NCBI GenBank assembly: GCA_002104905.1 | Contig: MCFE01000574.1 | Coordinates: 1 to 56,767 of the forward strand | Direction: 5' to 3' | Origin: Basidiobolus meristosporus CBS 931.73 | Lineage: Eukaryota > Fungi > Basidiobolomycota | Length of the DNA stretch: 56,767 bases | Shown: positions 1 to 43,512 of the stretch, one piece after another | How the letters are laid out: the number at the start of each line of letters is the position of its first letter | How positions within the stretch are numbered: the first letter of the stretch is position 1 | The notes under the pieces: model-generated | What the model was told of the DNA's origin: nothing | Databases searched by the model: none | Seen by the model: only the letters and a program-made list of their open reading frames with translations | Position numbers and translations under genes: made by a program

Positions 1-2397
1 AGCGGTACTTGTACTTTCGAGTGCGGTAACCCGAATAGTTTGAATTACTGTGGGGCTGATAATTGCAGTCTTCAAATTTTTTTCTTTGATTGTGGTGAGG
101 ATGGTCGTAGGAGTTAACGTTATGGTACTCTCTTCATCAGTTAGGGTTATTATTGATGTCACAATTGGAGTTATTGTTGAAGTATTCGGATCTGGAACCA
201 TTGTGGTTTCAAGAATAGTCGTTGGCGCTTCCGTTACAACACTTTCCTGACCTGTTATTGTTTGTTCTATGGTTGTGATAGGACTCAAAGTTGAGGTATT
301 TGGATTTGGAACTATTGTGGTTGCAAACACTGTTGTAGGCGCTTCAGTCACAACGTTTTCCTGACCGGTCATTGTTTGCTCTACGGTAGTGACCGGAATC
401 AAAGTTGAAGTATTTGGATTTGGAACTATGGTGGTTGCAAACACAGTTGTCGGCACTTCTGTTACAACGCTTTCCTGACCGGTCATTGTTTGTTCTACGG
501 TAATTACAGGAATCGATGTTGAGGTGTTTGGATTGGGAACTATTGTGGTTGCAAACACTGTTGTCGGCGCTTCAATTACCACACTTTCTTGAGCTGTCAT
601 TGTTTGTTCCACGGTAATTATAGGAATCGATGTTGAGGTGTTTGGATTGGGAACTACTGTGGTTGCAAACACTGTTGTCGGCGCTTCAATTACCACACTT
701 TCTTGAGCTGTCATTGTTTGTTCCACGGTAGTGACAGGAATCGATGTTGAGGTGTTTGGATTGGGAACTACTGTGGTTGCAAACACTGTTGTCGGCGCTT
801 CAATTACCACACTTTCTTGAGCTGTCATTGTTTGTTCTACGGTAGTGACAGGAATCGATGTTGAGGTGTTTGGATTGGGAACTATTGTGGTTGCAAACAC
901 TGTTGTCGGCGCTTCAATTACTACGCTTTCTTGAGCTGTCATTGTTTGTTCTACGGTAATTACAGGAATCGATGTTGAGGTGTTTGGATTGGGAACTACT
1001 GTGGTTGCAAACACTGTTGTCGGCGCGTCAATTACAACACTTTCTTGAGCTGTCATTGTTTGTTCCACGGTAGTGACAGGAATCGATGTTGAGGTATTTG
1101 GATTTGGAACTATTGTGGTTGCAAACACTGTAGTCGGCGCTTCTGTTACAACGCTTTCCTGATCTGTCATTGTTTGTTCAACGGTAATTACAGGAATCAA
1201 TGTTGAAGTATTCGGATTTGGAACTACTGCGGTTTCAAATAAAGTTGTCGGCGCTTCTGTTACGACACTTTCCTGGCCTGTTATTGTTTGTTCCACGGTA
1301 ATTACAGGAATCAATGTTGAGGTATTCGGATTTGGAACTATTGTGGTTGCAAACACTGTCGTCGGCGCCTCAGTTACAACGCTTTCCGGACCTGTCATTG
1401 TTTGTTCTGCGGTAGTGACAGGAATCAAAGTTGAAGTATTTGGGTTTGGAACAATTGGGGTTGTAGACGCAGTCGCCGGCGCTTCAGTAACAACGCTGCT
1501 CTGTACAATACTGGATGGTGTATTCGGTGCAGGCATGTTGCAAGCATTCGAAGATGTATATCCTGTGTAGCCGCAGACTTTGTTGCTAGGGCAACATGAT
1601 AAATGAGGATTTTGATAGCTACCGGTTGGGCAAACGAAGGTGTATGGACTGTCATCGGATTCGCAGTAGTATCCACCGTAATTGCTATTACAAGCGGTCA
1701 AAGCGTTTTGGTACACGCTTTCGGGAAGGTACCCACACCCTTCTCTTACATCATCTTTTTTAATATTGCACCCGTTACTTGATAGTGAGACGCCCACATG
1801 GCCACATACATATCCGCTATCACAGCATTCTGTAGTAACGCTTGTAGTTACGGAATTCCAAACTAATCTGAATGGGCTATAAGCCGAAGGGCAGTAGACA
1901 CCTGAACCAATCGGGTTTAAATCCGAATAAGCGGTTTGTAATTCCTCTTTCGTAGGTTGTTCTGAACAATCTTTCTTGCTGGATCCGGAACCTGAGGTCG
2001 GCTCCCAGTATTGTTGGCATGGCTCAGGTAGGTTATCAACATTTACGCCTGGATTGCCATTCGTATCACACGGAGTGGTATCCCAAAGTCCTACTTCTAA
2101 GGTCGAGTATGTATTTGAGGAGCAACATGTCAGTTGGGCTGGATTATCTCCATCACATTCATAATAGTAGACAGCGTTTGCTACAGGAACCCAATAGTTA
2201 GAAGCGCCGGGATTGAGATCGCTGTTGGCACATTGCTTATTGGCAATTTCTTGCGATGTTTCCATGGAAAAAAATGATGCGCTATCTGCAGCTCTATCAT
2301 CGTTGATTACCGGTTGCGCATTCACGCATGGTGCACTGTTGGCTGCAAGCGCCAGCACAAGCGCTGAAAATCTTAGAAATGATTTCGTCAAAATCAT
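1..2397 (-). CDS. Secreted or cell-surface protein with signal peptide, Cys-rich head and mucin-like Thr-rich repeat stalk (3'-partial, >=799 aa)
   Basis: Manual minus-strand translation from the ATG at 2397 (MILTKSFLRFSALVLALAANSAPCVNAQPV...) stays open to position 1. It is missing from the ORF track because it has no stop in the window. The head is homologous to the 296-aa ORFs, then it continues ...NACNMPAPNTPSSIVQSSVVTEAP into the repeats and ends ...TIRVTALESTSTA at the edge. Confidence 0.9.
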   Translation of the reverse strand, partial: MILTKSFLRFSALVLALAANSAPCVNAQPVINDDRAADSASFFSMETSQEIANKQCANSDLNPGASNYWVPVANAVYYYECDGDNPAQLTCCSSNTYSTLEVGLWDTTPCDTNGNPGVNVDNLPEPCQQYWEPTSGSGSSKKDCSEQPTKEELQTAYSDLNPIGSGVYCPSAYSPFRLVWNSVTTSVTTECCDSGYVCGHVGVSLSSNGCNIKKDDVREGCGYLPESVYQNALTACNSNYGGYYCESDDSPYTFVCPTGSYQNPHLSCCPSNKVCGYTGYTSSNACNMPAPNTPSSIVQSSVVTEAPATASTTPIVPNPNTSTLIPVTTAEQTMTGPESVVTEAPTTVFATTIVPNPNTSTLIPVITVEQTITGQESVVTEAPTTLFETAVVPNPNTSTLIPVITVEQTMTDQESVVTEAPTTVFATTIVPNPNTSTSIPVTTVEQTMTAQESVVIDAPTTVFATTVVPNPNTSTSIPVITVEQTMTAQESVVIEAPTTVFATTIVPNPNTSTSIPVTTVEQTMTAQESVVIEAPTTVFATTVVPNPNTSTSIPVTTVEQTMTAQESVVIEAPTTVFATTVVPNPNTSTSIPIITVEQTMTAQESVVIEAPTTVFATTIVPNPNTSTSIPVITVEQTMTGQESVVTEVPTTVFATTIVPNPNTSTLIPVTTVEQTMTGQENVVTEAPTTVFATTIVPNPNTSTLSPITTIEQTITGQESVVTEAPTTILETTMVPDPNTSTITPIVTSIITLTDEESTITLTPTTILTTIKEKNLKTAIISPTVIQTIRVTALESTSTA
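175..1500 (-). repeat. Coding tandem repeat, 114 bp (38 aa) x ~11.5
   Basis: Equivalent positions fall at 248, 362, 476, 590, 704, 818, 932, 1046, 1160, 1274 and 1388. The unit is ~ESVVTEAPTTVFATTIVPNPNTSTLIPVITVEQTMTGQ. Central units are nearly identical and edge units are diverged. Confidence 0.95.
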
Positions 2398-19916: not shown

Positions 19917-20063
19917 TATTAAGTTGAAGCTATTGTTGACCATGATGGAGATGAACCAAATTGCCTTTATTCAGTCAGGTGGAAAGGTTATGATGCCAAA
20001 CACAACACCTGGGAACCTTACACCAACTTTGATGATGTTGCCATCATTGATCAGTACTGGAGC
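19917..20063 (+). other. Chromodomain-coding segment of the gypsy integrase
   Basis: Translates as Y*VEAIVDHDGDEPNCLYSVRWKGYDAKHNTWEPYTNFDDVAIIDQYW, with the chromodomain Y..E.I, VRWKGY and TWEP motifs. Confidence 0.88.
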
Positions 20064-23000: not shown

Positions 23001-23757
23001 GAACACACCAACAATTGTTGACATTGTTGGATTTTCTGGGTGAAATGGATGGTATTACTGTCAAATTTGTCAGACACAGGGGATGTACTCCACCATATTT
23101 ACACACTATGGCATAAGGCACCTTTGGGTTGGTGTTGGAGTAATTTTTGAGGAATGAAAGTCACTAGTTGATCAAATCTTGACTTAAACTAAGTAGCAAC
23201 TAGTTGCTAATTAAATCAGAGAAGTCAACAAGCTCATATTCTGTTTTAAGACAAATATGAGTCTAAATTGGTTCCAGTTCCTCAGTAGCTTGAGAGCTGA
23301 GTTATATTCACACAACTTGTGAGCATACTCATCATCAAAGTCAATTGGTTCTTAGTAAATATTCTATTCAAATGTATAAAGTTTTGACAAAAATTATTTG
23401 CTACAACCCAAGTATCCCATAACTACAGAATAATATGTTGGTGATGATCCAAAGATTTGGATTGCTACATTAAGGAGATTTGAAGGAATATAAATAACGC
23501 TTCTGTCCAGAGAGTTGCAGAAATGTTTCCTGTGGGATACCATCATAGAGCAAGAATTCCTCATGTATTAACCTGTATTACCAGCTTGGCCATAATGCTC
23601 AACAAATGTGATCAAGTATTGCAGGAGAGCAAGCTGGTGTGCTGTTTTGCAAACAGATTGTGTGTATTTCTTCATTAACCAGAAAGTACAAGTTGAGACA
23701 ATCTTAGAGTTCTTTATTTTGAAGTATCACTACAACTCATAAAATTTCTGGTTTTAT

Positions 23758-23806
23758 CTAATTTTCACTACTGGAAGTTGTATTTGTTACTACTGGTGAA
23801 AATCAT
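23758..23806 (-). pseudogene. Family copy with the head deleted (ATG and terminal codons only)
   Basis: The minus strand reads tattaactATGATTTTCACC joined directly to AGTAGTAACAAATACAACTTCCAGTAGTGAAAATTAG. The upstream and downstream flanks match those of the intact copies. About 840 bp of the 891-bp CDS are missing. Confidence 0.85.
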
Positions 23807-25254
23807 AGTTAATAGTAGAGATTCCTGGGCATTTCATTTATAAACTAGATGCAACACCGCATCAGGACAATCTTTTGGCCTTTGAAATCGTTTCAGATAA
23901 CCCTGTGACCGCTGGTGATCGACTAAATTTCTGGCTAATGAGAATATCCCAATAGCTGAAATGTTGGTCTTGGAAAGCTAACCCTACTTTCTGTACAATA
24001 TATGGCGCTTCTTGAGTCCACTAGATTGTTGATTTGGAGAACCAACCATTCGATCAACCTGCTTCTCCATAGGCTTGGTGCTATTGGCAGACTATGTTTG
24101 TAAACCTTGAGATCTTATTGATCTGGATATATTTACTGCGACGCTTACTTAGATTGTATACTTGAAGAAGTTAATTAAGCCTCACTAATAAGTTCAGCCT
24201 ATCTTTGCTGAAGGAAGCGGAGGGTCTCCAATTTTTTCAACAGGCAGTTTTATCTAGAAGATTAGTCTCCATGAGGCACCTATAGCAAGCTCTGGTGGTT
24301 ACAGGATAATCGTCGCCATTGAAGAAGTTTCTAAATTGATTTTGCTCAGAACTTACCAGAACATGTTTTTTCCGTAAGCCACGTCCCTGCTGTTAAGAAT
24401 CTAGGTCGACTAAGCTTCATCATATGAAAATAATGATATTCCCAATACTATTCATCGAATATCTATATGGATAAAGCTACATTGCGTGTGGTATTGATAC
24501 TGTTGGCAAAACATGGGACAAAGCCGTTACTGGTGACCAGAACATACTAATAAGATTTAACAAGTGTGACAAATGTCAGTATAAATCGGGAAACACATCA
24601 AGCAACTAAGAATACACTACACATATTTGATTCTTATATTTTTGTGATTGTGATGATGCTATGCAAATATTGCTTATCTACTGCCATTAAACATACTTGT
24701 ATTGATATTGAATGTTGCTTTATCCTTGTGGCGAATGTTATTATATCTCAATTTCCAGGCCTGCAAGCACCCAAATGGCTGGAACATTGTATTCTAGCTG
24801 GATGATTTGGAACTGTTTAGATTATATTGTAATAGACAAACCATAACATTGGTCGTCCTTCCCAGGATAATGGGATATTCGAATACCTCGATGAATGTGA
24901 GTAGTATCGCGATACTGCATTGTTGTCGTCCTTTGCTTGTTTGACAGATTAGTTTCCACGCATATGGGTAGGCCTCATTCCAGGACAAGTATAAGATCCC
25001 ATATTCTATGCCGCATTGTTTTCTTGACTTGCTACAACTCTTCATTTGCTGTAATAGATGATTCCAGCACCACAATCAAGGTGGCATCTTCTCGCTTGTA
25101 TACAATTTGTAAATATCCATAATTACGCGCATTCCTCTATACAATACATTGGTTTGTCTTTCCTCAACGAACAGTTGGACCTGTATAAGTTCTGAGACAA
25201 GATGCTGCTCTACTCTGGCAACGCATCTATATCCTGGTCGTTATTGTACCCTCT

Positions 25255-25487
25255 TTATCTGTGACCGTTATTATTAATATCAAAATTGGAGTCGACGTCG
25301 ATGTAATCGAATTTAATGCTGTTATGATTCTAGGAATCATCATTGGCGGTTCCGTTATAAAACCTTTCGGACCACTGATAGTTTCTTACACAGTAATGAT
25401 GGAATCAATGTTGAGGTAGGAACATTTCTTATTTCTAGAATACTTTATTTTGGAGTATCACTACTACTGATATGATTTCTGGTATTT
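25255..25487 (-). pseudogene. Decayed stalk-coding relic downstream of the head-only stop (also after copies 3-6)
   Basis: GTTCCTACCTCAACATTGATTCC matches the repeat sequence GTTCCAAATCCGAATACCTCAACATTGATTCC. ACTCCAATTTTGATATTAATAATAACGGTCACAGATAAAGAGGGTACAATAACG matches the long gene's ACTCCAATTGTGACATCAATAATAACCCTAACTGATGAAGAGAGTACCATAACG. Confidence 0.8.
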
Positions 25488-26378
25488 TTAGTTTACACTA
25501 CTGGAAGTGGTATTCGCTACCAGCATGTTGCAAGCATTCGAAGTTGTATATCCCGAGTGGCCGCAGACTTTGTTGCTAGGACAACACGACAGATGAGGAT
25601 TAAGATAGTCACCAGTTGGGCAAACAAAGGTGTATGGACTGTCTTCGGATTCGCAGTAGTATCCACCGTAATTGCTATTACAAGCGTTCAAAGCGTTTTG
25701 GTACACGCTTTCGGGAAAGTCCCCACACCCTTCTCTAACATCCTCTTTTTTTACGTTGCACCCATTGCTTGTTAGTGAGATGCCCACATGGCCGCATACA
25801 TCTCCACTGTCACAACATTCGGTGTCAACGCTTGAAGTTGCGGAATTGCAAACTAATTTGAAGGGGCTATATGCCGAAGGGCAGTAGACACCACCACTGC
25901 CAATAGCGTTGCAGATGCTTACAGCGCTCTGAAACTCCTCTTGCGAAGGTTTTGCTGAGCAATCTTTCTTGCTGGATCCTGAACTTGAGGTCGGCTCCCA
26001 GTATTGTTGGCATAGCTCAGGTATGTTATCAACATTTACGCCTGGATTGCCATTCATATCACACGGAGTGGAATCCCAAAGTCCCACTTCCAAGTTGGTG
26101 TATGTATTTGGGGGGCAACATGTCAGTTGGGCCGGACTTGCTCCATCACATTCGTAATAGTAGACGCCGTTTGTTTCAGGCACCCAGAAGTTGGTAGCGC
26201 CGGCATTGAGATAGCTGTTGCGACATTTCTCATTGGCAACTTCTTGGGATGTTGCCATCGAGAAAAATGCAGCTCTGTCACCGTTGAATGTAGGGTGCGC
26301 ATTTGCGAGTAGTTCACTGCTGGTTGTAAGTGCTAGCACAAGTGCCGACAATCTCATAAAAGAATCGGTGAACATCAT
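25488..26378 (-). CDS. Secreted Cys-rich protein, 296 aa (head-only copy 2)
   Basis: Intact ORF with a hydrophobic N-terminus (RLSALVLALTTS...ANA), 22 Cys and two aligned 8-Cys modules. Confidence 0.92.
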   Translation of the reverse strand: MMFTDSFMRLSALVLALTTSSELLANAHPTFNGDRAAFFSMATSQEVANEKCRNSYLNAGATNFWVPETNGVYYYECDGASPAQLTCCPPNTYTNLEVGLWDSTPCDMNGNPGVNVDNIPELCQQYWEPTSSSGSSKKDCSAKPSQEEFQSAVSICNAIGSGGVYCPSAYSPFKLVCNSATSSVDTECCDSGDVCGHVGISLTSNGCNVKKEDVREGCGDFPESVYQNALNACNSNYGGYYCESEDSPYTFVCPTGDYLNPHLSCCPSNKVCGHSGYTTSNACNMLVANTTSSSVN

Positions 26379-29277
26379 AGTTAATAATAGATATTCCCGA
26401 GCATTTCATTCATTTATAAACTAGATGCAACACCGCATCAGGACAATCTTCTGGCCTTCGATATCTTTGCCGATAACCCTGTGACCGCTGTTGATTGACT
26501 AAATTTCTGGTTTGCAGGGTATCTTTTCTTGATTTGTATCTCGATGTATCCGATTGGAATGTATCTTTTGGTGATATATGTCTAGATTCAATGACTGGGC
26601 ACAAGTAATGGCCGATTGGCAGCCATTCGGGATAATCAGTGCGCGCTGTAAGCTGGTAAGTTTAGCCACCCGGGACAAGTCAATACGCTTTGCAAGCTGA
26701 AAGTTGAGCCACCCTGAAAACGCAACGGGCTTTGTGGGCTGATAAGTGGAGCCGCCCGGGTGAACTAATTGTGAATGATGGTAAAAAAATCTCAAAGAGT
26801 GGCATATTGACGGTATTCATACTGCTTCCCTAATGAGCTCAGTATTGAAAACGAGATCCTAATTGGGCTTCAAACCCAGTTGCAAATAAATACTTCAAAT
26901 AAGTTACTAAGGACCAGTAAATATTCTTATGCAGGTAAAACCTGCTCGATCTAAATAGCAGTGCTATGGAGTTTTGGTGGGCTAATCTGAACTGTCCCCG
27001 GACTATCGCTGAACCAATTCGAAGGGTTACCAATTTCAGTGTTACTAGATCCATATTCCTAATTAGTCCCGTAATTAATGCACTCCAGCTATAAAGGGAT
27101 GTTATGGCGCTCAAGCGAATCATCAGTAATGCTAATTGGGATGTTAGTATTAGGAAGTAAACCCTACTTTCTGTTCTATGCTTGTGGCTTCTTGAGGCCG
27201 CTTGAATGTCGATCTGAAAATCCAACCATTGGATCAATCCGCTTCTCGAAGGGCTTGGTGCTATTGGCCGACTATATTAGTAAGCCTTGGGATTTAATTG
27301 ATATGGATACACTTACGGCCGCGCTCATCCAGATTGTAAACCCGGAGAAGTTGATTATGCCTTTATCAATAAGAAGTCCAGGGTTTTTTCCGAAGGAGAG
27401 GGGTCCCAAATTTTCCCAACAAGCAGTATTTCCCAGAATATTGGCCGCAATGAAGCTCCTTTAGCAACCACTAGAATTTACAGGATAATCATAGACTTTG
27501 AAGAAGTTTCTAATCTAAATTTGTTCAGAACTTACCCGAACATACCGTTTCCATAAGCCACATCCCTGCTGTTAAAGACCTAGGTCGACCAAGCTCCATC
27601 ACACCAAGAATAATGAACTTTCTCAATACTATTCATCGAATATCTAAATTGATAAAGCTACATCGCGGGTGGTATTGGTACTGTTTGCTAAACATGTATC
27701 AAAGTCGTTACTGCGAATCAGAACAAGAGAATAGGATTAAAAACTGTGACAAATGTCAGTAAGAAATGGGAAACACATTTAGCGAGAAATCACTACACAT
27801 ATTCAATTCTAATATTTTTGTGATCGTAATTATGCCATGCGACTATTGATTATGTACTGCTATGAATATAAATAGATATTAAATGTTGCCTTGCCCTCGT
27901 AGTGAATGTTATCATACCTCAATATCCAGACATGCAAGCACCCAGATGGCTGGAACATTATATTCTTGCTGGTTGTTGTAGAAATGTATAGATAATATTG
28001 TAATATACGAACCATATCATTGGTCGTCCTACCGAGGCTAATGAGAAATTCGAAAACCTAGATGAATGTAAGTTATGTTGTCACGATACTGGCACTTTTG
28101 TCATCCTCTATTTAAATGACTAATCAGTTTCCGTGCCTCTGGATAGGCCCCATTAAAGTGTAAGTATTAGATCCCGTATTCGGTACCATAGTGTTTCGCA
28201 TAATGTATAAGATGATTTCAGCACTACAGCCTATGAGATATTTTCTCTCTCGTATACTATACGTGAATATATAAAATTGCGCGCGTTCCTCTATGCCATA
28301 GATTGGTTTGTCTTTCCTACATATGCGATGCGACTACGACTTATTAATCCTGAATTTATTCTTCCAAATGATTACTTGAGTTCCAAAATCCTTTATAAGT
28401 CGGATAAATTGTTTGTTGCTACAGCGGAGTCCTTCTTGGGTTATCCTATAGAATTACCTCTTTAGTCCTACGTAATACTTACAAGATGAACCATGCGCTA
28501 TCCAATTAGTAAAAAATAGAATATTCCATTTCAATATTTCTGGATTCATCGAGTTGTAAATAATTTGCGAGAAAACGATCGCTAGAATCACCTAATTGTG
28601 GAAACTCCATTAAGGGCTCAAGTTGTTATCAGTGAGTTGGCATGGACCATTAAATACTCCCTAATACAGCTCTCGGATTACATATGCTAATAGGGTCGTC
28701 ACCAATCCTGATCTCCACCGTGCAGAGTGGGTAGATCATGGAGTAAAATTCACTACACACATACCATCCACATCAACTCAGCCTTTCAGCGATTTATCCA
28801 AAGCGAAAGAACTATCAAGTTTGGCATTATCTGCACTGAAGTAAATTTCATGTCGACTAATCCAAAATGAATGTTTACGCCCCCAATGGGACATATAGTG
28901 ACGACTGTACTGACACAAATATGGAAGTATTTCTTAACTATCGTATGGGAAACATAATTGCCTATAAATTTACATCACTAGGTTTTAGGCAACGGTGACC
29001 TGACTGATAGACTGACCATAACAGTATGTGGTTAGTGTACTCACTTTATCTGTGATGCTTAATATTAATGCCGAAATTGGTTAGAATTATATGTAATCGA
29101 ATTTAGCGCTATAATCTTGATAAGGATTGTCATAGGGATTTCTTAGTAAAACCTTTCTGACCACTTATAGCTCATTACATAGCAATGATGCACTCAATGT
29201 TAAGGTAGGAGCTGTTGTTATAGTAAGAACCCTTTATTGTGGAGTCTCACTACGGCTCGTTAAATCTGTGGTATTTT

Positions 29278-30168
29278 CTAATTAACAACACTTGAAGTTG
29301 TATTCGTTACCAGCATGTTGCAAGCATTCGAAGTTGTATATCCCGAGTGGCCGCAGACTTTGTTGCTAGGACAACACGACAGATGAGGATTTAGATAGTC
29401 ACCAGTTGGGCAAACAAAGGTGTATGGACTGTCTTCGGATTCGCAGTAGTATCCACCGTAATTGCTATTACAAGCGTTCAAAGCGTTTTGGTACACGCTT
29501 TCGGGAAAGTCCCCACACCCTTCTCTAACATCCTCTTTTTTTACGTTGCACCCATTGCTTGTTAATGAGATGCCCACATGGCCGCATACATTTCCACTGT
29601 CACAACATTCGGTGTCAACGCTTGAAGTTGCGGAATTGCAAACTAATTTGAAGGGGCTATATGCCGAAGGGCAGTAGACACCACCACTGCCAATAGCGTT
29701 GCAGATGCTTACAGCGCTCTGAAACTCCTCTTGCGAAGGCTTTGCTGAGCAATCTTTCTTGCTGGATCCTGAACTTGAGGTCGGCTCCCAGTATTGTTGG
29801 CATAGCTCAGGTATGTTATCAACATTTACGCCTGGATTGCCATTCATATCACACGGAGTGGAATCCCAAAGTCCCACTTCCAAGTTGGTGTATGTATTTG
29901 GGGGGCAACATGTCAGTTGGGCCGGACTTGCTCCATCACATTCGTAATAGTAGACGCCGTTTGTTTCAGGCACCCAGAAGTTGGTAGCGCCGGCATTGAG
30001 ATAGCTGTTGCGACATTTCTCATTGGCAACTTCTTGGGATGTTGCCATCGAGAAAAATGCAGCTCTGTCACCGTTGAATGTAGGGTGCGCATTTGCGAGT
30101 AGTTCACTGCTGGTTGTAAGTGCTAGCACAAGTGCCGACAATCTCATAAAAGAATCGGTGAGCATCAT
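29278..30168 (-). CDS. Secreted Cys-rich protein, 296 aa (copy 3)
   Basis: Intact ORF that differs from copy 2 at only a few residues. Confidence 0.92.
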   Translation of the reverse strand: MMLTDSFMRLSALVLALTTSSELLANAHPTFNGDRAAFFSMATSQEVANEKCRNSYLNAGATNFWVPETNGVYYYECDGASPAQLTCCPPNTYTNLEVGLWDSTPCDMNGNPGVNVDNIPELCQQYWEPTSSSGSSKKDCSAKPSQEEFQSAVSICNAIGSGGVYCPSAYSPFKLVCNSATSSVDTECCDSGNVCGHVGISLTSNGCNVKKEDVREGCGDFPESVYQNALNACNSNYGGYYCESEDSPYTFVCPTGDYLNPHLSCCPSNKVCGHSGYTTSNACNMLVTNTTSSVVN

Positions 30169-30469
30169 AGTTAATAGTAGATATATCCAGGCATTTCATT
30201 CAATTATATACTAGATACAACATCGCATCAGGACAATCTTTTGGCCTTCGATATCTTTGCGGATAGCCCTGTGACCGCTGTTGATTGACTAAATTTCTGG
30301 TTTGCAGGGTATCTTTTCTTGATTTGTATCTCGATGTATCCGATTGGAATGTGTCTGTTCTTGATATATATCTAGATACATCCGATTGGAATGTATCTTT
30401 TGGTGATATATATCTAGATTCAATAAGCGGGCACAAGTAATGGCCGATTGGCAGCCATTCGGGAAAATC

Positions 30470-30600
30470 AGTGCGCGCTGTAAGCTGATAAGCTGAGCCA
30501 CCCGGGAGAATCAATGCTCTTTGCAAGCAGGATAGTTGAGCTACTCCGGAGAAGCAATGCGCTTTGTGAACTGATAAGTGCAGCCACCCGGGAGAACTAG
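30470..30600. promoter_or_regulatory. Upstream ~42-bp imperfect repeat cluster with GATAAG motifs (also ~26640-26765, 34447-34530, 38690-38770, 42855-42975)
   Basis: gcgct..g..(a/g)ctgataag..gagccacccggga occurs 2-3 times about 300-430 bp upstream of each short gene, next to CCAATCG boxes. The regulatory role is inferred. Confidence 0.5.
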
Positions 30601-33252
30601 TTGTGAACGACAGTGCAACAATCTCAAACTGGGGATATATACGGTATTCGTACTGCTTCCCGAAAGAACTCATTATTGATAACGAGGTTCTAATTGGGCT
30701 TGAAACCCGGTTGCTAATGGATACCTCAAATATGTTACCAGGGACCGGTAAATATTCTTATGCAGGTAAAACCTGCTGGGTCTAAAATAGCAGTGCTATG
30801 GAGTTTTGGTGGGCTAATCTGAACTGTCCGCGGGCAGTCGCTAAACCAATTAGAAGGGTCACCAATTTCAGTGTTACTAGATCCATATTCCTAATTAGTC
30901 CCGTAATTAATGCACTCCAGCTTTAAATGGTTGTTATGGCGCTCAAGCGAATCACCAGTAATGCTTATTGAGAACGGGGGTATAGTCGCGATGAGAATGA
31001 CCCAATAATTGAGATATTAGTCTTAGGTATCTAACCCTGCTTCCTGTGCTATGTTTATGGCTTCTTGAGGCCACGAGAAAGTTGTTCTGAAAAATCTACT
31101 ATTTGATCACTCAACTTCTGGAAGGGCTTGGTATGTTTGGTCGACTATATTTGGAAAACTTAAGATTTAATTGATATGGATATACTAACTGCCGCACGTA
31201 CCTAGATGGTAAACCCGGAGAAGTTAATTAAGCCTTTATTGATACATTTCGGCGATTTTTTCCGAAGGAGGAGGGTCCGCAATTTTCCCAGCAAGTAGCA
31301 TTACTTAGGTCGTTGGTCATCAAGAAGCACTTATAGCAAGCACTAGTGATTACATGATAATTACCGGCATCGATGAAGTTTCGCATCTAATTTTGATCAG
31401 AACCCACCTGAACATGCCTTTTCCATAAGCCACGTCCCTACTGTTAAGAATCTAGGCCGACCAAGCTCCATCAAATGAAAAATAATGAGATTTCTCAATA
31501 GTTTTCATTGAATACCGATATGCATAAAGCTGCATTGCGGGTGGTATTGAAATTGTTTGCAAAACATGGGACGAAGTCGTTACTGATGATCAGAACAAGC
31601 TGATAGAAATAAAATCTGTGATAAATGCTAGTATGAATCCGGCATGACATTTAGCAAGTAAGAATTTACTACACATATTTGATTCGTATATTTTTGTGAT
31701 CGTGATTCTGCCATGCAACTATTGATTATGTACTGCAATGAGTATACTTGTAATAATATTAAATGTTGCATCGCCCTCTTGGTGAATGTTATTATACCTC
31801 AATTTCCAGGCCTGCAAGCACCCAGATGGCTGAAATATTGTATTCTTGCTAGCTCTTTCAAAAATGTATACATAAAATTGTATTTTACGAACAATATCAT
31901 AGGTCGTCCATCCGAGGCCAGTGAGAAATTCGAAAATTAGATGAATACATGCAATGTCATCACGATACGGACACTTTTGTCGGCCTCTACCTGCTACACT
32001 AATCGGTCTCTATACATTTGGGTAGGCATCATTACAGTACAAGTTTTACATCAGGTATTCGGTGTCATAATGCTTTATCTACTGTAAAAAATGATTAAGG
32101 CTCGTCGTACTTGTCTATGACGTTCATCAAATCCATGCTAGTCGAGCCTGATTAGGCCACGATCACGTATAACATATTTGTTCTTGCAAATGATTTTTTA
32201 AGATTAGCGGCAGTTGCTACAACGTAATCCTTCTTGAGTTACCCAATCTAATTACCACTTTGTTGCTACGTAGCAAATGGATAATGCTTACAAGATGCAC
32301 CATGCTCCAGCCAAATAAGTAAAATATAGAATATTCTATTCCAATGATTCTGGATTCATTGAGGTGTAAATATTTTGTGAGAAAACGATCGTTGGAATCG
32401 CCCATTTGTGGATATGCCATTTAGAGCTATTGATAAATTATTAACTAGTAAGTTGGCATGGACCACTTTATACTCCCTAATACAGCTCTCGGATTACATA
32501 TACCATGGAATCGTCACCACAATTGATCTCCGCCATGTACAGTGGGTAGAGCATGGCGTCAATTCTCTACACACATAACATCAACCTCAGCTTAGCCTTT
32601 CAGCGATTTGTTCGAAGCGATTGCACTATTAAGTTGAACATTATCTACACCGGAGTTAACTACAAGTCGATTAAGCCATAATAAATGTTTACATACCCAA
32701 TGCAACAAACAGTGGTGACTGTACTGACAAAAACACGGTAGTATTTCTTAACTATCGAATAGGAAACTCTTTTGCCTATAAATGTATGATTTTTGTAAGT
32801 GAATGCGATTGCCGTTGTTTGAGTCGCCATATCAGAGTCTGCCATGTCATGCCCACAGATACTGGAATAAAAATTGCCACTGCTAACGTTGGGACAGCAA
32901 TCCCGATTACGGGATTCAAGGACAGGATTCAATAACAGTACATGTTTCACTAATAGTTTAGGTAACGGTAACCTGACTGATAAACTGATCATAACAGTAT
33001 GCGATTAGCGTACTCACTTTATCTGTGATGGTCAATATTACTGTCGAAATTGGATTTGGCGATGATGTAATCACATTTAGTACTGTTATCTTTGTAAAAA
33101 TTGTTATATGCGGATCAGTTGCACAACCTGTCTGACCACTTATTATTCATTACATAGCAATGATGCACTCAATGTTAAGGTAGGAACTGTTGTTATAGTA
33201 AGAACCCTTTATTGTGGAGTCTCACTACGGCTCGTTAAATCTGTGGTATTTT

Positions 33253-34143
33253 CTAATTAACAACACTGGAAGTTGTATTCGTTACCAGCATGTTGCAAGC
33301 ATTCGAAGTTGTATATCCCGAGTGGCCGCAGACTTTGTTGCTTGGACAACACGACAGATGAGGATTAAGATAGTCACCAGTTGGGCAAACAAAGGTGTAT
33401 GGACTGTCTTCGGATTCGCAGTAGTATCCACCGTAATTGCTATTACAAGCGTTCAAAGCGTTTTGGTACACGCTTTCGGGAAAGTCCCCACACCCTTCTC
33501 TAACATCCTCTTTTTTTACGTTGCACCCATTGCTTGTTAATGAGATGCCCACATGGCCGCATACATTTCCACTGTCACAACATTCGGTGTCAACGCTTGA
33601 AGTTGCGGAATTGCAAACTAATTTGAAGGGGCTATATGCCGAAGGGCAGTAGACACCACCACTGCCAATAGCGTTGCAGATGCTTACAGCGCTCTGAAAC
33701 TCCTCTTGCGAAGGCTTTGCTGAGCAATCTTTCTTGCTGGATCCTGAACTTGAGGTCGGCTCCCAGTATTGTTGGCATAGCTCAGGTATGTTATCAACAT
33801 TTACGCCTGGATTGCCATTCATATCACACGGAGTGGAATCCCAAAGTCCCACTTCCAAGTTGGTGTATGTATTTGGGGGGCAACATGTCAGTTGGGCCGG
33901 ACTTGCTCCATCACATTCGTAATAGTAGACGCCGTTTGTTTCAGGCACCCAGAAGTTGGTAGCGCCGGCATTGAGATAGCTGTTGCGACATTTCTCATTG
34001 GCAACTTCTTGGGATGTTGCCATCGAGAAAAATGCAGCTCTGTCACCGTTGAATGTAGGGTGCGCATTTGCGAGTAGTTCACTGCTGGTTGTAAGTGCTA
34101 GCACAAGTGCCGACAATCTCATAAAAGAATCGGTGAACATCAT
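33253..34143 (-). CDS. Secreted Cys-rich protein, 296 aa (copy 4)
   Basis: Intact ORF, near-identical to copy 3. Confidence 0.92.
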   Translation of the reverse strand: MMFTDSFMRLSALVLALTTSSELLANAHPTFNGDRAAFFSMATSQEVANEKCRNSYLNAGATNFWVPETNGVYYYECDGASPAQLTCCPPNTYTNLEVGLWDSTPCDMNGNPGVNVDNIPELCQQYWEPTSSSGSSKKDCSAKPSQEEFQSAVSICNAIGSGGVYCPSAYSPFKLVCNSATSSVDTECCDSGNVCGHVGISLTSNGCNVKKEDVREGCGDFPESVYQNALNACNSNYGGYYCESEDSPYTFVCPTGDYLNPHLSCCPSNKVCGHSGYTTSNACNMLVTNTTSSVVN

Positions 34144-37100
34144 ATTTAATAATAGATATTTCCAAGCATTTCATTCATTTATAAACTAGATACAACATCG
34201 CATCAGGACAATCTTTTGGCCTTCGATATCTTTGCGGATAGCCCTATGACCGCTGTTGATTGACTAAATTTCTGGTTTGCAGGGTATCTTTTCTTGATTT
34301 GTATCTCGATGTATCCGATTGGAATGTGTCTGTTCTTGATATATATCTAGATGCATCCGATTGGAATTCATCTTTTGGTGATATATATCTAGATTCAATA
34401 AGTGGGCACAAGTAATGGCCGATTGGCAGCCATTCGGGAAAATCAGTGCGCGCTGTAAGCTGATAAGCTGAGCCACCCGGGAGAATCAATGCGCTTGGTG
34501 GGCTGATAAGTGGAGCCACCCGGGAGAACTAGTTGTGAACGACAGTGCAACAATCTCAAAAATGTGGGATATATACGGTATTCGTACTGCTTCCCGAAAG
34601 AACTCATTATTGAAAACGAGATCCTAATTGGGCTTCAAACCCAGTTGCAAATAAATACTTCAAATATGTTACCAAGGACCAGTAAATATTCTTACGCAGG
34701 TAAAGTCGCTAAACCAATTAGAAGGGTCACCAATTTCAGTGTTACTAGATCCATATTCCTAATTAGTCCCGTAATTAATACACTCCAGCTATAAAGGGAT
34801 GTTATGACGCTCAAGCGAATCATCAGTAATGCTAATTGAGGTGTTAGTCTTAAGAAGCTAGCCCAATAATCTATATAATAAATGTGGCTTCCTAAGTTCA
34901 CTAGATTGGTGATCTGAAACAACTACCGTTCGATCACTCCGCTTCTAGAAGGGTTTGGTGCAATCGACTGACTATATTTGTAAACCTCAGCATATTACTT
35001 ACCTGGATACACTTACTACCGCGTTTACGTAGATTGAAAGCCCGAAGAAATCGATTTAGCCTTCATTAATAGTTTTGAGCGATTTTTGCCACAGGATGCA
35101 GATGGTCCCCAATTTTTTGACAGGTAATAATACCTAGAATACTGTTCGCCATGAAGATCTTTTGTAAGGTCTAGTGAATGATTGATAATTACCGGCATTG
35201 AAGAAGTTTCTAATCTCATTTTACTCAGAGCATACCCGTACATACGTTTTCCATAAGCCACATCCCTGCTGTTAACGTTCCAGGCCGACCAAGCTCCATC
35301 ATATGAAGAATAGTGAGCTTTCTCAAAAAAATTCATCGAATAGCTATATTGATAAAGTTGTATTGTGGGTGGTACGAATATTGTTTATAAAACATGGGAC
35401 AAAGCCGTTACTGGTGATCAGAACATGCTAATATGATTAAACGAGCGTAATAAATGCCAGTATGAATCCGGAATGACATTTAGCCTGTAAGAAATTACTA
35501 CACCTACTTGATTCTTATATTTTTGTGATCGTATTATGTCTTGCAACTAATAATATTTTGTGATCATGATTATGCCATGCAAATATCGATGATCTACTAC
35601 TATGAACATACTTGTATTAATATTAAATGTTGCGTTATACTCGTAGTGAGTGTTGTTAAACCTGAATTTTTAGGCCTGCAAGCACTCGAATGACTGCTAC
35701 ATTGTATTCTTGCTAATTTTTTTAGCAATGTATAGATTACTTTGTAATAGACGATCTATACCATTGGTTGTCCTGCAGAGGCAAATGAGAAATTCAAATA
35801 CCGAGATGAATGTGAGTAATTTTGTCACGATACTGATACGTTTGTAGACTTGTTTGACTAATCAGTTTCTATACATTTGGATAGGTCCCATTCTAGTACA
35901 AGTGTTAGATTCCGAATTCTGTGCAATAATGTTTCATAAATGCGATACGACTCTTCATATATTGTAATAGAGGAATCCAGCACTACAACCTATGAGATAT
36001 TTTCTCTCGCGTATACAGTTTTTTAAAATTCATAATCGCGCGCGTTCCTATATACAATATATTATTTGCCGTTCCTACACATGTGATGCGACTATGTTAA
36101 CGAACACTTCGACGTTAATAAATTCTGAGTGGCGGTACCGCTACACTCCGACAAGGCGTCTATCTCAGCTTGTACATGTCTATGACGTTGAACAAGTCGA
36201 TGCCAGTCGAGCCTGATTAGGCCATGATCACGCAAAAACATTTATTTTTCCAAATGATCTCCTCAAATGCTAAATTCATTGGAATTCAATCATTCTTTTC
36301 AGTTACCTATCTAATTACCACTTTGTTGCTACGTAGCAAATGGATAATGCTTACAAGATGCACCATGCTCCAGCCAAATAAGTAAAATATAGAATATTCT
36401 ATTCCAATGATTCTGGATTCATTGAGGTGTAAATATTTCGTGAGAAAACGATCGTTGGAATCGCCCATTTGTGGATATGCCATTGAGAGCTATAGGTAAG
36501 TTATTAACTAGGGATTTGGCATGGGCCACTATATACTCCCTAATACAGCCCTCGGATTGCATATACAAATGAAGTCGTTGTCAATTTTGATCTCCACCAT
36601 GCACTGTGGATAGATTATGGCATCAATTCTCTGCACACACACCATCGATCTGAACTTAGCCTTTCAGCGATCTATCTGAAGCTATTCAGCTATTACGTGT
36701 TGCATTATCCGCACCGGGGAAACTTTCAGGTCGATTCAGCCAAATTAAAAGCTTACATTCTCAATGGAACACATAGTGATGACTGTATCGACAAAAACAA
36801 GGCAGCATTTCTCAATTATCACATTGAAAACTTCATAGCCTATAAACGTATGGTTTTTGTAACCCTGAAATTCGCCAGTTGGGAGAAATTTGATTCAATT
36901 AGAGCATTAGCGAACTAATTACTTAAATAAAGAAACCAGTAAGCTCGTATCCGTTTTTTAAGCCAAATATGAACCCAAGTTCTTCTGTGGGTCTTCAGCA
37001 AAATCATATTCATGCAACATGAAGAGCGGCGGCCATTACTCTACACTTTGGCAATTTTACACTCGTTGCGATTGCTGTTGTTTGAATTACCACTACCAGC

Positions 37101-37494
37101 ATTGCCCATATCATGCTTACTGATACTGGAACAAGCATTACCACTGCTAATGTCGGGAGAGTGATCGCGATAAGTGGAATCAATAAGAAGGCTCAATGAA
37201 AGTACTTTTTTCACTATATGCTTAGGTAATAAAGACTTGACTCATAGACTAATCGCAACATGATGAGCATAACTGTAATGGTTATTATTGAGGTCAAAAT
37301 TGGGGTTGACGTAGAGATAATCGAATTCAGTACTCTTTTGATTGTAAGAATTGGCGGTTCTGTTACATAACTTTCTGACCACTTACCATTGGTTGCACAG
37401 TAATGATGTAATCAATGTTGAGGTAGGAACAGTTCTTATTTCTAGAATACTTTATTTTGGAGTATCACTACTACTGATATGATTTCTGGTATTT

Positions 37495-38385
37495 TTAGTT
37501 TACACTACTGGAAGTGGTATTCGCTACCAGCATGTTGCAAGCATTCGAAGTTGTATATCCCGAGTGGCCGCAGACTTTGTTGCTTGGACAACACGACAGA
37601 TGAGGATTAAGATAGTCACCAGTTGGGCAAACAAAGGTGTATGGACTGTCTTCGGATTCGCAGTAGTATCCACCGTAATTGCTATTACAAGCGTTCAAAG
37701 CGTTTTGGTACACGCTTTCGGGAAAGTCCCCACACCCTTCTCTAACATCCTCTTTTTTCACATTGCACCCATTGCTTGTTAGTGAGATGCCCACATGGCC
37801 GCATACATTTCCACTATCACAACATTCGGTGTCAACGCTTGAAGTTTCGGAATTGCAAACTAATTTGAAGGGGCTATATGCCGAAGGGCAGTAGACACCA
37901 CCACTGCCAATAGCGTTGCAGATGCTTACAGCGCTCTGAAACTCCTCTTGCGAAGGCTTTGCTGAGCAATCTTTCTTGCTGGATCCTGAACTTGAGGTCG
38001 GCTCCCAGTATTGTTGGCATAGCTCAGGTATGTTATCAACATTTACGCCTGGATTGCCATTCATATCACACGGAGTGGAATCCCAAAGTCCCACTTCCAA
38101 GTTGGTGTATGTATTTGGGGGGCAACATGTCAGTTGGGCCGGACTTGCTCCATCACATTCGTAATAGTAGACGCCGTTTGTTTCAGGCACCCAGAAGTTG
38201 GTAGCGCCGGCATTGAGATAGCTGTTGCGACATTTCTCATTGGCAACTTCTTGGGATGTTGCCATCGAGAAAAATGCAGCTCTGTCACCGTTGAATGTAG
38301 GGTGCGCATTTGCGAGTAGTTCACTGCTGGTTGTAAGTGCTAGCACAAGTGCCGACAATCTCATAAAAGAATCGGTGAGCATCAT
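37495..38385 (-). CDS. Secreted Cys-rich protein, 296 aa (copy 5)
   Basis: Intact ORF with the same C-terminus as copy 2 (VANTTSSSVN). Confidence 0.92.
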   Translation of the reverse strand: MMLTDSFMRLSALVLALTTSSELLANAHPTFNGDRAAFFSMATSQEVANEKCRNSYLNAGATNFWVPETNGVYYYECDGASPAQLTCCPPNTYTNLEVGLWDSTPCDMNGNPGVNVDNIPELCQQYWEPTSSSGSSKKDCSAKPSQEEFQSAVSICNAIGSGGVYCPSAYSPFKLVCNSETSSVDTECCDSGNVCGHVGISLTSNGCNVKKEDVREGCGDFPESVYQNALNACNSNYGGYYCESEDSPYTFVCPTGDYLNPHLSCCPSNKVCGHSGYTTSNACNMLVANTTSSSVN

Positions 38386-41300: not shown

Positions 41301-41657
41301 AGAGTGATCATGATTAGTGAATTCAATGCTAAGGCTCAATGAGAGTACTGGTTTCACTAATGGTTTAAGTAACAGTGATCGCGACTGAGATTAATCAGAA
41401 CATTTTTAGGTTAGTGTACTCATTTCATCTGTGACAGTTGTTATCAATATCGAAATTGGAGTCGACGTCGATGGAATCATATTTAATGCTATTGTGATTG
41501 TACGAATTATCATTAACGGTTCCGTTGCATAACTTTCTGACCACTTTGAGTTTCTTACACAGTAATGCTGTAATCAATGCTGATGTAGGAACAGTTGTTA
41601 TTTCAAGAATACTTTATTTTGGAGTCTCGTTACAACTCGTAGTGTCAGCGTTATTTT

Positions 41658-42548
41658 CTAATTTACAATACTGGAGGTTGTATCCGATACAAGCATATTG
41701 CAAACATTCGAGGCTGTATATCCCGAGTGGCCGCAGACTTTGTTGCTAGGACAACACGACAGATGAGGATTTAGATAGTCACCAGTTGGGCAAACAAAGG
41801 TGTATGGACTGTCTTCGGATTCGCAGTAGTATCCACCGTAATTGCTATTACAAGCGTTCAAAGCGTTTTGGTACACGCTTTCGGGAAAGTCCCCACACCC
41901 TTCTCTAACATCCTCTTTTTTTACGTTGCACCCATTGCTTGTTAGTGAGATGCCCACATGGCCGCATACATCTCCACTATCACAACATTCGGTGTCAACG
42001 CTTGAAGTTGCGGAATTGCAAACTAATTTGAAGGGGCTATATGCCGAAGGGCAGTAGACACCACCACTGCCCATGTCGTTGCAGATGCTTAGAGCACTTT
42101 GTAATTCCTCTTGCGAAGGTTTTGCTGAACAACCTTTCTTGCTGGATCTTGGACTTGAGGTCGGCTCCCAGTATTGTTGGCATAGCTCAGGTATGTTATC
42201 AACATTTACGCCTGGATTGCCATTCATATCACACGGAGTGGAATCCCAAAGTCCCACTTCCAAGTTGGTGTATGTATTTGAGGAGCAACATGTCAGTTGG
42301 GCTGGACTTGCTCCATCACATTCGTAATAGTAGACGCCGTTTGTTACAGGAACCCAGTAGTTAGATGCGCCGGCATTGAGATAGCTATTGAGGCATTGCT
42401 CATTGGCAACTTTTTGCGATGTTTCCATGGAAAAAAATGCAGCTCTATCGTAGTTGACCGTAGGGTGCGCATTTGCGCGTGGTGCACTGCTGGTTGTAAG
42501 TGCTAGCACAAGTGCTGACAATCTCATAAAAGAATTGGTAAACATCAT
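41658..42548 (-). CDS. Secreted Cys-rich protein, 296 aa (copy 6, mosaic)
   Basis: Intact ORF. The N-terminal part is diverged and partly like the long gene (FFSMETSQ, GASNYWVPV, CCSSNTY), while the C-terminal half matches copies 2-5. Confidence 0.92.
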   Translation of the reverse strand: MMFTNSFMRLSALVLALTTSSAPRANAHPTVNYDRAAFFSMETSQKVANEQCLNSYLNAGASNYWVPVTNGVYYYECDGASPAQLTCCSSNTYTNLEVGLWDSTPCDMNGNPGVNVDNIPELCQQYWEPTSSPRSSKKGCSAKPSQEELQSALSICNDMGSGGVYCPSAYSPFKLVCNSATSSVDTECCDSGDVCGHVGISLTSNGCNVKKEDVREGCGDFPESVYQNALNACNSNYGGYYCESEDSPYTFVCPTGDYLNPHLSCCPSNKVCGHSGYTASNVCNMLVSDTTSSIVN

Positions 42549-43512
42549 AGTTAATAGTAGATATTCCTGGGCATTTTATTCATTTATAAACTAGATGCAA
42601 CATCGTATCAGGACAATCTTTTGGCCTTCGATATCTTTGCGGATAGCCCTGTGACCGCTGTTGATTGACTAAATTTCTGGTTTGCAGGGTATCTTTTCTT
42701 GATTTGTATCTCAATGTATCCGATTGGAATGTGTCTGTTCTTGATATAAATCTAGATGCATCTGATTAGAATGTATCTTTTGGGGATATATGTCTAGATT
42801 CAATAATTGGGCACAAGTAAAGGCCGATTGACAGCAATTCGAGAGAATCAGTGCGCGCTGTAAGCTGATAAGCTGAGCCACCCGGGAAAATCCATGCTCT
42901 TTGTAAACAGGATAGTTGAGCCACTCCGTAGAAGCAATGCGCTTTGTGGGCTGATAAGTTGAGCCACCCGGGAGAACTAGTTGTGAACGACAGTGCAACA
43001 ATCTCAAACTGGGGACATATACGGTATTCGTACTGCTTCCCGAAGGAACTCATTATTGAAAACGAGGTCGTAATTCGGCTTCAAACCCGGTTGCTAATAA
43101 ATACCTCAAATAAGTTACCAAGGACCAGTAAATATTCTTATGCAGGTAAAATCGCTAAACCAACTAGAAGGGTCACCAATTTCAGTGTTACTAGATCCAT
43201 ATTCCTAATTAGTCCCGTAATTAATGCACTCCAGCTATAAAGGGATATTATGGCGCTCAAGCAAATCACCAGTAATGCTTATTGAGAACGGGGCTATAGT
43301 CGCGATGGGAATGACCTAATAGTTAAGATGTTGGTCATAGGAAGCTAACCCGTTATTTGTATAATGCTTATGGCTTAACGCATCCTCCTGATTGTTGATC
43401 TGAAAAGCCAAACATTTTATTACTCCGCTTCTTGAGAGATATGGATAAACCATCTGCCTCGTTTACCTAGATTGTAAACCATGTGTAGCTAATTAAGCCT
43501 TAATCAAAAAAT

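Follow-up and report, generated by a model that had tools for sequence, protein, structure and literature searches.

A tandem array of genes for Cys-rich secreted proteins in Basidiobolus meristosporus probably evolves in concert through short-tract gene conversion

Globin genes and the duplicated ribosomal-protein genes of yeast are classical cases of interlocus gene conversion. The theory of such conversion between duplicates has been reviewed together with examples (PMC3924837); in one of these, exon 5 of the primate opsin genes, a peak of divergence lies within the converted region and marks residues of known function. In the tandem KRTAP1 genes of mammals, the coding regions are in concerted evolution and the flanks diverge normally; the authors of the study rule out purifying selection, codon adaptation and reverse transcription as causes, and arrive at short-tract conversion combined with selection (Zhou et al., bioRxiv 10.1101/282418). 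We found no paper in the literature that joins Basidiobolus with gene conversion for genes of the kind described here.

The window analysed, 56.8 kb long, is an entire PacBio contig of Basidiobolus meristosporus CBS 931.73. On its minus strand lies an array of five intronless genes, each encoding 296 aa, and its left end is occupied by a diverged "long" relative. The four central genes, c1 to c4, occupy positions 25488..26378, 29278..30168, 33253..34143 and 37495..38385 (all minus strand). The fifth, c5 (41658..42548, minus strand), is a mosaic copy at the edge of the array and, like the long gene c0 (1..2397, minus strand, with its head at 1501-2397), lies beyond the coordinates of the first-pass annotation. 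Homologous spacers, to which no strand is assigned, separate the copies (26379..29277 between c1 and c2, then 30169-33252, 34144-37494 and 38386-41657), and no listed ORF occurs in them at equivalent positions in all units. A relic unit from which most of the CDS has been deleted lies at 23680..23950 (minus strand), and LTR-type ORFs with reverse-transcriptase domains, together with gag, protease and integrase domains, flank the array on both sides. This locus resembles KRTAP1: the genes are tandem, lack introns and encode Cys-rich proteins that are structural or secreted, the coding region is homogenised and the flanks radiate.

From its signal peptide and its three CBM14-like modules rich in Cys, the product is probably a secreted chitin-binding protein. 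The exact c1 protein is present in NCBI under B. meristosporus CBS 931.73. Pfam returned no family at E <= 10 for c1 or c0, leaving PF01607 (CBM_14) unmatched, and a Foldseek search with the structure model, in which pLDDT reached 70-86 only over residues 140-288, gave no match at E <= 0.001. The top six rows of VIA-align were all CBM14 proteins, at a Z of only 3.1-4.1, and in phmmer residues 239-281 matched an insect protein that carries 14 CBM14 domains (E 6.5e-4). Predicted modules 2 and 3 align to Cladosporium fulvum Avr4, to Aplysia EHEP (the best structural match of the model), to the CBM14 of human chitotriosidase and to Der p 23; unlike these CBM14 (peritrophin-A) proteins, each of the two modules has eight Cys and a leading helix. 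UniRef names the paralogues 'Chitin-binding type-2 domain-containing protein'. Relatives were found in Basidiobolus only, the other one being a 35%-identical B. ranarum fragment.

The first-pass annotation had described coding heads that are almost identical, synonymous sites included, and spacers that are strongly diverged. Both descriptions proved accurate: any two of c1-c4 are separated by 4-15 differences in 891 nt and by 1-4 residues (the variable ones being F/L3, A/E180, D/N193, A/T288 and S/V294, as listed in that annotation), and their spacers differ by 22-26% plus indels. We computed p-distances among c1-c4 by segment, in gene orientation and relative to the ATG. From 0.22-0.26 in -1500..-800, they fell to 0.105-0.25 in -800..-301 (where c4 is the outlier, at 0.23-0.25 from the other copies) and to 0.010-0.052 in -300..-51, rose to 0.05-0.15 in -50..+9, and dropped again to 0-0.002 in +10..+477 (0-1 of 468 nt differing) and 0.006-0.020 in +478..+834 (2-7 of 357 nt). 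In +835..+980 they were 0.014 within {c1,c4} and within {c2,c3} and 0.19-0.21 between these pairs, and in +981..+1150 they reached 0.23-0.34. Over whole spacers, K2P was 0.19-0.25, with many indels (71-187 gapped columns). This segment-wise profile confirmed a near-identical block between diverged flanks: c1-c4 share a homogenised block of ~1.15 kb, from about -300 to +834, and the rest of their ~4-kb units is 20-30% diverged. Patches common to subsets of copies extend to about -800 and +980, and c2 and c3 have a common tract of 1.5 kb (-352..+1185) with 96.2% identity.

The block does not coincide with the gene. Its coding core, CDS nt 10-834, corresponds to 25545..26369 in c1, 29335-30159 in c2, 33310-34134 in c3 and 37552-38376 in c4 (minus strand), so that the first 9 nt and the last ~30-55 nt of the CDS fall outside. 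The assertion that the sequence just before the ATG differs held for about 50 nt and failed for -300..-51 (26429..26678 in c1, minus strand), where identity among c1-c4 is 95-99%. This promoter-proximal block contains 42-nt tandem repeats, of which c1 is one unit short. The stretch -170..-60 is conserved in c0 too. The last codons do differ, as had been claimed, and ~30 nt at the end of the CDS go with the diverged flank rather than with the identical block.

Two segments bracket the core, and both exist as two old haplotypes. The island -50..+9 (26370..26428 in c1, 30160-30218 in c2, 34135-34193 in c3 and 38377-38435 in c4, minus strand) covers a TATA-like box, a short leader and codon 3, and occurs as haplotype X in {c1,c3} and Y in {c2,c4}; its divergence exceeds that of the core with p 1e-8 for c1-c2 (Fisher test). 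The 3' end block +835..+980, which runs from the last codons through the stop into ~90 nt of 3' flank, is of type A in c1 (25399..25544) and c4 (37406-37551) and of type B in c2 (29189-29334) and c3 (33164-33309; all minus strand), with 98.6% identity within types and about 80% between them. The four genes thus display all four combinations of ends: X-A (c1), Y-B (c2), X-B (c3) and Y-A (c4). As in opsin exon 5, a short divergent island is flanked by homogenised sequence and consists of shared haplotypes rather than private mutations, but here it comprises a TATA-like box, a leader and codon 3, without a known functional difference. Compared with KRTAP1, the Basidiobolus block enters the promoter by about 300 nt, contains this island and ends 30-55 nt before the stop, and the evidence comes from one genome, with no species phylogeny.

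Synonymous divergence among c1-c4 is very low, with dS of 0.011-0.033 over nt 1-858 and 0-0.010 over nt 1-477. The comparison of dS with spacer divergence had been set beforehand as the test that could refute conversion; CDS dS turned out to be 10-20 times below the spacer K2P, and no refutation resulted. Given a spacer-like p of 0.22, the probability of <=6 synonymous differences in 184 synonymous sites is about 4e-13. The edge copy and the long gene provide internal controls. In c5, CDS nt 1-477 show 41-42 differences from c1-c4 and a dS of 0.21-0.23, with states that mostly match c0, whereas nt 478-834 (41715-42071 in the window) are of the array type, with 2-6 differences, and over nt 478-858 dS drops to 0.064-0.092; from nt 835 to 891 the divergence returns. 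c5 has been converted in its 3' half only. The head of c0 is 74% identical to the array genes in protein and 82% in nucleotides (dS 0.30-0.38, dN/dS about 0.4), and runs on into 36-aa Thr/Val/Pro-rich repeats that continue past the beginning of the contig. The DNA flanking c0 shares homology with the array spacers (70-79% identity) and is as distant from them as these are from each other, whereas CDS divergence differs 10-30-fold. This gene, ~20 kb from the array across an interval with retrotransposon-derived ORFs, escaped conversion altogether and serves as an unconverted control. Since dS in the 5' half of c5 and in c0 roughly matches spacer divergence, synonymous sites are free to change and purifying selection on them is excluded, in agreement with the earlier contention that purifying selection alone would not suffice.

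The distribution of variants points to exchange between copies. All three bipartitions of c1-c4 are found within 891 nt: site 7 and the island support {c1,c3|c2,c4}, sites 604 and 862-891 support {c1,c4|c2,c3}, and site 801 supports {c1,c2|c3,c4}. At sites 429, 570 and 777 a different single copy keeps the c5/c0 state each time, so that derived variants occupy different three-of-four subsets of copies. The outlier also switches by segment, from c4 in -800..-301, where c5 falls inside the group, to c5 in +10..+477. A Sawyer-type permutation on 171 polymorphic sites, a simplified stand-in for GENECONV/RDP, gave p = 0.0005 for c2-c4, c3-c4 and c2-c5, and p = 0.003-0.0085 for c1-c2, c1-c3, c1-c5 and c2-c3. 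The incompatible site patterns, the segment-wise incongruence and the permutation test show exchange between copies directly. The gene conversion proposed in the first-pass annotation is supported, but its focus on the CDS was too narrow, as the 250 promoter-proximal nt are also homogenised and the CDS ends are excluded. Changes fixed in c1-c4 comprise 15 W->S and 4 S->W (19 sites only), against 8:8 in c5, and GC3 is 0.397 in c0, 0.434 in c5 and 0.465 in c1-c4; this W->S excess and GC3 rise, a small sample, are in the direction predicted by GC-biased conversion, a pattern that may support our reading and is not required by it.

A second array, of three genes (ORY06119-21), is present elsewhere in the genome. 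Protein differences number 1-2 aa inside it, 1-4 aa inside c1-c4 and 16-19 aa between the arrays, a comparison made at the protein level only and between two arrays of one genome. The C-terminal half of c5 groups with c1-c4 against this second array, and its N-terminal half falls outside both.

We conclude, with a probability of roughly 0.85, that c1-c4 are in concerted evolution via repeated short-tract interlocus gene conversion. On this reading the family is an old tandem one, with a non-coding divergence between units of about 0.25 substitutions per site, and its central members c1-c4 have been homogenised through repeated, short-tract, non-reciprocal copying. The protein and the core promoter would be under purifying selection, which may preserve enough uninterrupted identity for recombination and so let tracts persist there; tracts may stop where unconstrained DNA is too diverged for heteroduplex formation. 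Such identity feedback would concentrate homogenisation on the gene, and selection for a uniform, high-dose product may contribute. As in the classical cases, recurrent tracts hold paralogue divergence low and create chimeric haplotypes, and the process ends when substitutions or transposon insertions disrupt pairing, so that separated copies, here c0, escape. The mechanism is no different from those cases; here it acts on an array of five copies in an early-diverging fungus (Zoopagomycota). Identity feedback alone leaves the divergent island inside the block unexplained, and interlocus conversion does not explain why the relic has lost exactly CDS nt ~14-856.

In the relic, promoter, ATG and CDS nt 1-12/13 remain and are fused directly to nt ~857-891 and the 3' flank; the part that it lacks matches the homogenised core of c1-c4. 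Because this deletion coincides with the core, and because the core is bracketed by two-haplotype ends, we entertain, as a doubtful idea, that the core is a discrete cassette with ends set by something other than gradual flank divergence. A still less likely explanation is that several old units once carried the relic-type deletion and had their core (nt ~14-856) restored or replaced in c1-c4 by gap repair from one intact donor. This would be a special case of gene conversion rather than ongoing exchange among all copies, with young cores, old flanks and boundaries set by the deletion junctions. It would account for the relic and for the bounds of the near-identical segment, at which the 5' haplotype sites end (nt 7) and the 3' ones begin (nt 862), a match between relic and core with a chance, roughly estimated, of about 1e-3. 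However, a single relic is seen, the promoter block -300..-51, beyond the island, is homogenised too, and the partial tract of c5 starts at nt ~478, away from the junction; moreover, core SNPs are mosaic (429, 570, 604, 777, 801), so that exchange among copies is required anyway.

The remaining alternatives appear weaker. Reverse-transcribed mRNA of one copy might recombine with the genomic copies and homogenise only transcribed sequence, as the intronless gene, the ORFs with reverse-transcriptase domains on both sides of the array and the position of the main block inside the probable transcript could suggest. We consider this very improbable: -300..-51, upstream of the TATA-like box, is probably untranscribed and yet 95-99% identical, the 3' UTR and last codons, which any poly(A)-primed cDNA carries, are not common to all copies, and subset-shared patches reach -800. 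Consensus errors do occur in near-identical repeats, and pooling reads of different copies during consensus calling would make these falsely alike, but the genome was sequenced with PacBio (PMC7466969), and because the ~1.15-kb block has unique spacers, diverged by 20-30%, on either side, reads of a few kb are anchored. Copy-specific SNPs also survive, as does a 42-nt indel particular to one copy, neither c5 nor the second array has lost its own variants, and every ORF is intact; collapse of the copies through consensus polishing is, by this argument, highly unlikely. The least probable explanation dispenses with exchange, invoking either a recent duplication of whole units whose spacers then decayed unusually fast, or synonymous sites held by purifying selection through codon bias or RNA structure. 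Nothing specific favours it; the CDS is constrained at the protein level (dN/dS about 0.4 against c0). A spacer ts/tv of about 1.1 speaks against mutational bias or RIP-like acceleration, the spacers of c0 are as distant as those of the array are mutually despite the 10-30-fold difference in CDS divergence, synonymous sites do change in c5 and c0, and incompatible site patterns require recombination.

Concerted evolution by interlocus conversion, our preferred reading, is a well-known phenomenon (e.g., KRTAP1, globins), and the understanding of gene conversion is unchanged by this locus. This 57-kb contig carries its own controls, as the edge copy is converted in one half, the long gene has escaped and the relic is deleted. 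It is a compact case of concerted evolution, of teaching grade, and we found no other reported for Basidiobolus protein-coding genes. It also warns that dating families or estimating duplication rates from CDS divergence will lead to bad underestimates in this repeat-rich genome, the age obtained here being 10-20 times too young. If the core were a cassette, one protein would be kept while distinct regulatory ends of each copy were preserved by selection or by the recombination mechanism, which would imply either regulatory subfunctionalisation under a shared coding cassette that conversion maintains, or recurrent gap repair from deleted copies. As a lineage-restricted secreted family that is uniform and multi-copy in a gut-associated fungus, these proteins are a reasonable candidate for a high-dose chitin-coating function.

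The window is one whole contig of 56,767 nt, and its array consists of five intronless 296-amino-acid ORFs on the minus strand, c1 (25488-26378), c2 (29278-30168), c3 (33253-34143), c4 (37495-38385) and the edge copy c5 (41658-42548), spaced 3.8-4.2 kb apart. Their proteins exactly match NCBI entries, and the B. meristosporus CBS 931.73 genome was obtained by PacBio sequencing (PMC7466969). Pairs among c1-c4, numbered copies 2-5 in the first-pass annotation, differ at 4-15 of 891 nucleotides and at 1-4 residues, the same ones that the first-pass annotation had listed, and the diverged spacers that it described were also recovered (whole-spacer K2P 0.19-0.25, with many indels). The spacer ts/tv of about 1.1 rules out RIP-like or otherwise biased decay, and the nearly star-like spacer distances rule out a two-unit periodicity. 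The spacers give no support for a second gene, since the ORF list contains no ORF at equivalent positions across all units.

We computed segment p-distances among c1-c4 in gene orientation (positions counted from the ATG) and ran sliding windows as well. Divergence was 0.22-0.26 at -1500..-800, 0.105-0.25 at -800..-301, only 0.010-0.052 at -300..-51, 0.05-0.15 at -50..+9, 0-0.002 at +10..+477 and 0.006-0.020 at +478..+834. At +835..+980 it was 0.014 within {c1,c4} and within {c2,c3} and 0.19-0.21 between these pairs, followed by 0.23-0.34 at +981..+1150. The block homogeneous in all copies measures ~1.15 kb. The divergence previously noted just before the ATG is therefore real for ~50 nt only, the next 250 nt upstream being 95-99% identical, and the near-identity of the CDS holds for most of its length, its final ~30 nt forming part of the diverged flank. 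Each promoter also carries two sets of tandem repeats, with 2.3-2.8 copies each, ~140 to 430 nt 5' of the ATG: 42-nt units (30309-30419, 34286-34394, 38526-38636 and 42689-42799) and 43-nt units (30487-30596, 34428-34528, 38670-38769 and 42852-42973). The c1 promoter has one 42-nt unit fewer than the other copies. These repeats may be arrays of regulatory sites.

Exchange between copies left direct traces. Informative sites within the 891 nt support all three bipartitions of c1-c4: {c1,c3|c2,c4} at site 7, {c1,c4|c2,c3} at sites 604 and 862-891, and {c1,c2|c3,c4} at site 801. At sites 429, 570 and 777, the state found in c5 and in c0, a diverged long relative near the left end of the window, occurs in one copy, a different one each time, so derived variants have reached three of the four copies in varying combinations. 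The outlier also shifts by segment, being c4 in -800..-301, where c5 falls inside the group, and c5 in +10..+477. In a Sawyer-type permutation test on 171 polymorphic sites, the pairs c2-c4, c3-c4 and c2-c5 each reached p = 0.0005, and four further pairs had p values of 0.003-0.0085. The edge copy c5 is a mosaic, with the c0 state at 32 of the 58 sites departing from the c1-c4 majority. The more homogenised the copy, the higher its GC3 (c0 0.397, c5 0.434, c1-c4 0.465), and weak-to-strong changes fixed in c1-c4 outnumber strong-to-weak ones 15 to 4, compared with 8:8 in c5; both trends fit GC-biased conversion, in a small sample.

Purifying selection alone had been considered insufficient to explain the near-identity of the coding sequences, and silent sites bear this out. 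Among c1-c4, dS (Nei-Gojobori) was 0.011-0.033 over nt 1-858 and 0-0.010 over nt 1-477, against the spacer K2P of 0.19-0.25, a comparison that leaves conversion standing; if silent sites had diverged like the spacers, the probability of at most 6 differences among the 184 synonymous sites would be about 4e-13. Two internal controls are available. The 5' half of c5 differs from c1-c4 with a dS of 0.21-0.23, roughly equal to spacer divergence and dropping to 0.064-0.092 over nt 478-858, and c0 shows a dS of 0.30-0.38 with every array copy, matching its 70-79% identical flanks. Because the c5 5' half and c0 diverge, constraint on silent sites cannot account for the identity of c1-c4, and the same two controls contradict a recent duplication of these copies.

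The transfers among the tandem copies were repeated, short and non-reciprocal, with tracts ranging from <150 nt (the 3' end types) up to 1.5 kb. The longest, between c2 and c3, covers -352..+1185 and is 96.2% identical; a megablast self-comparison at >= 95% gave only two merged HSPs. Unequal crossing-over of whole units cannot have been the homogenising force, because the spacers remain 20-30% apart. Conversion mediated by cDNA does not fit either, since the -300..-51 block was homogenised although it is probably untranscribed, and the 3' UTR is not common to all copies. It is unlikely that consensus polishing collapsed the copies: the 1.15-kb block is flanked by unique spacers, the assembly was built from long reads, and copy-specific SNPs and a 42-nt indel have been kept. 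Gene conversion focused on the CDS, as initially proposed, is thus well supported as regards exchange, but its target has to be redrawn to include the 250 nt at -300..-51 and to leave out the final ~30 nt of coding sequence.

For such conversion among tandem copies, purifying selection on the protein and the core promoter might preserve the uninterrupted identity needed for recombination (dN/dS is about 0.4 between the array genes and c0, and -170..-60 of the promoter is conserved in c0 as well). The unconstrained spacer would already have diverged beyond this identity requirement, so that homogenisation would concentrate on the gene; this corresponds to the standard model, for which PMC3924837 is a review. 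A selective advantage of a uniform, multi-copy product may add to homogenisation. The half-converted state of c5 fits this model, and the escape of c0 is consistent with pairing disrupted by distance and intervening inserted DNA.

A relic unit (23680-23950, minus strand) lies directly 3' of c1. In it the promoter, the ATG and CDS nt 1-12/13 remain and pass without a gap into CDS nt ~857-891, followed by the 3' flank. What it lacks, CDS nt ~14-856, is the segment near-identical in c1-c4, whose limits are marked by haplotype sites nt 7 and nt 862. Each of the regions on either side has two haplotypes, and all four combinations are present among c1-c4. This match between deletion and homogenised segment may be due to chance (roughly 1e-3), may arise because no tract that involves a deleted copy can pass the junction, or may reflect cores filled in from one donor.

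The long gene c0 (1-2397, minus strand) begins with a three-module head as in the array (1501-2397; protein 74% identical to the array genes) followed by at least 13 tandem 36-amino-acid, Thr/Val/Pro-rich, mucin-like repeats extending past the start of the contig. Since this head continues into the repeats, the array genes amount to 'head-only' forms of a long, mucin-like gene. Upstream, c0 has a flank that shares 70-79% identity with the homologous array spacers, and a relic of the c0 tail (130-180 nt, 70% identical) occurs 3' of c1, c4 and c5; c0 thus belongs to this tandem family as an old member. Apart from this relic, nothing of the long-gene tail was found in the array. Module 2 of c0 lacks two cysteines of the array genes (Cys156 and Cys177, c1 numbering), possibly one disulfide pair. 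The gap of ~20 kb between c0 and the array contains ORFs with copia-type gag, integrase and reverse-transcriptase domains.

Retroelement-domain ORFs lie on both sides of the array (8400-20190 and 44000-56767), including a copia-type gag and integrase, a gypsy-type gag-protease-RT-RNaseH-integrase set and further RT ORFs. The copies of a ~690-nt repeat at 14709-15389, 20105-20793 and 48021-48711 are 82-89% identical. A search of the whole window found no run of three TTAGGG units; short TTAGGG-like scraps are present at 46513-46535 and 46690-46725, between repeated ~90-nt element ends, and do not establish a subtelomeric context. A tandem duplication of the same ~86-nt unit lies at 43620-43793.

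By inspection, the array protein has a signal peptide, probably cleaved after ANA (residue 27), and 22 cysteines in three modules. Pfam scans of c1, c5 and c0 yielded no matches at E <= 0.01 or E <= 10, a phmmer search of PDB sequences gave chance matches only, and Foldseek against the PDB returned none at E <= 0.001. A word-based protein search retrieved the gene's own 90% cluster alone. An exhaustive search added Basidiobolus relatives, including a B. ranarum fragment; it also linked the protein weakly (E 6.5e-4) to an insect protein that carries 14 CBM_14 domains, and a Ruminococcus fn3-domain protein aligned in short stretches only. In UniRef the paralogues carry the label chitin-binding type-2. 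The AlphaFold model is confident for residues 140-288 only, and its best structural matches, all weak (Z 3.1-4.1), are CBM14 proteins (EHEP, the chitotriosidase CBM14, Avr4 and Der p 23). The array protein is read as a divergent, CBM14-like secreted protein that probably binds chitin.

A second array, with at least three 296-amino-acid paralogues (ORY06119, ORY06120 and ORY06121), is located on another contig (245,994 nt) of this genome. Its proteins are 1-2 residues apart internally and 16-19 residues from c1-c4. The C-terminal part of c5 groups with c1-c4 against this second array and its N-terminal half lies outside both. The second array could represent a paralogous or homeologous locus, or else a diverged haplotype.

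We found no report of such conversion in the Basidiobolus literature. Tandem families in which the coding region is homogenised while the flanks diverge normally are already known; the closest published parallel that we found is mammalian KRTAP1 (bioRxiv 10.1101/282418), and the general theory and further examples of gene conversion between duplicates are covered in PMC3924837. The c1-c4 array of B. meristosporus is a well-supported further case of this concerted-evolution pattern.
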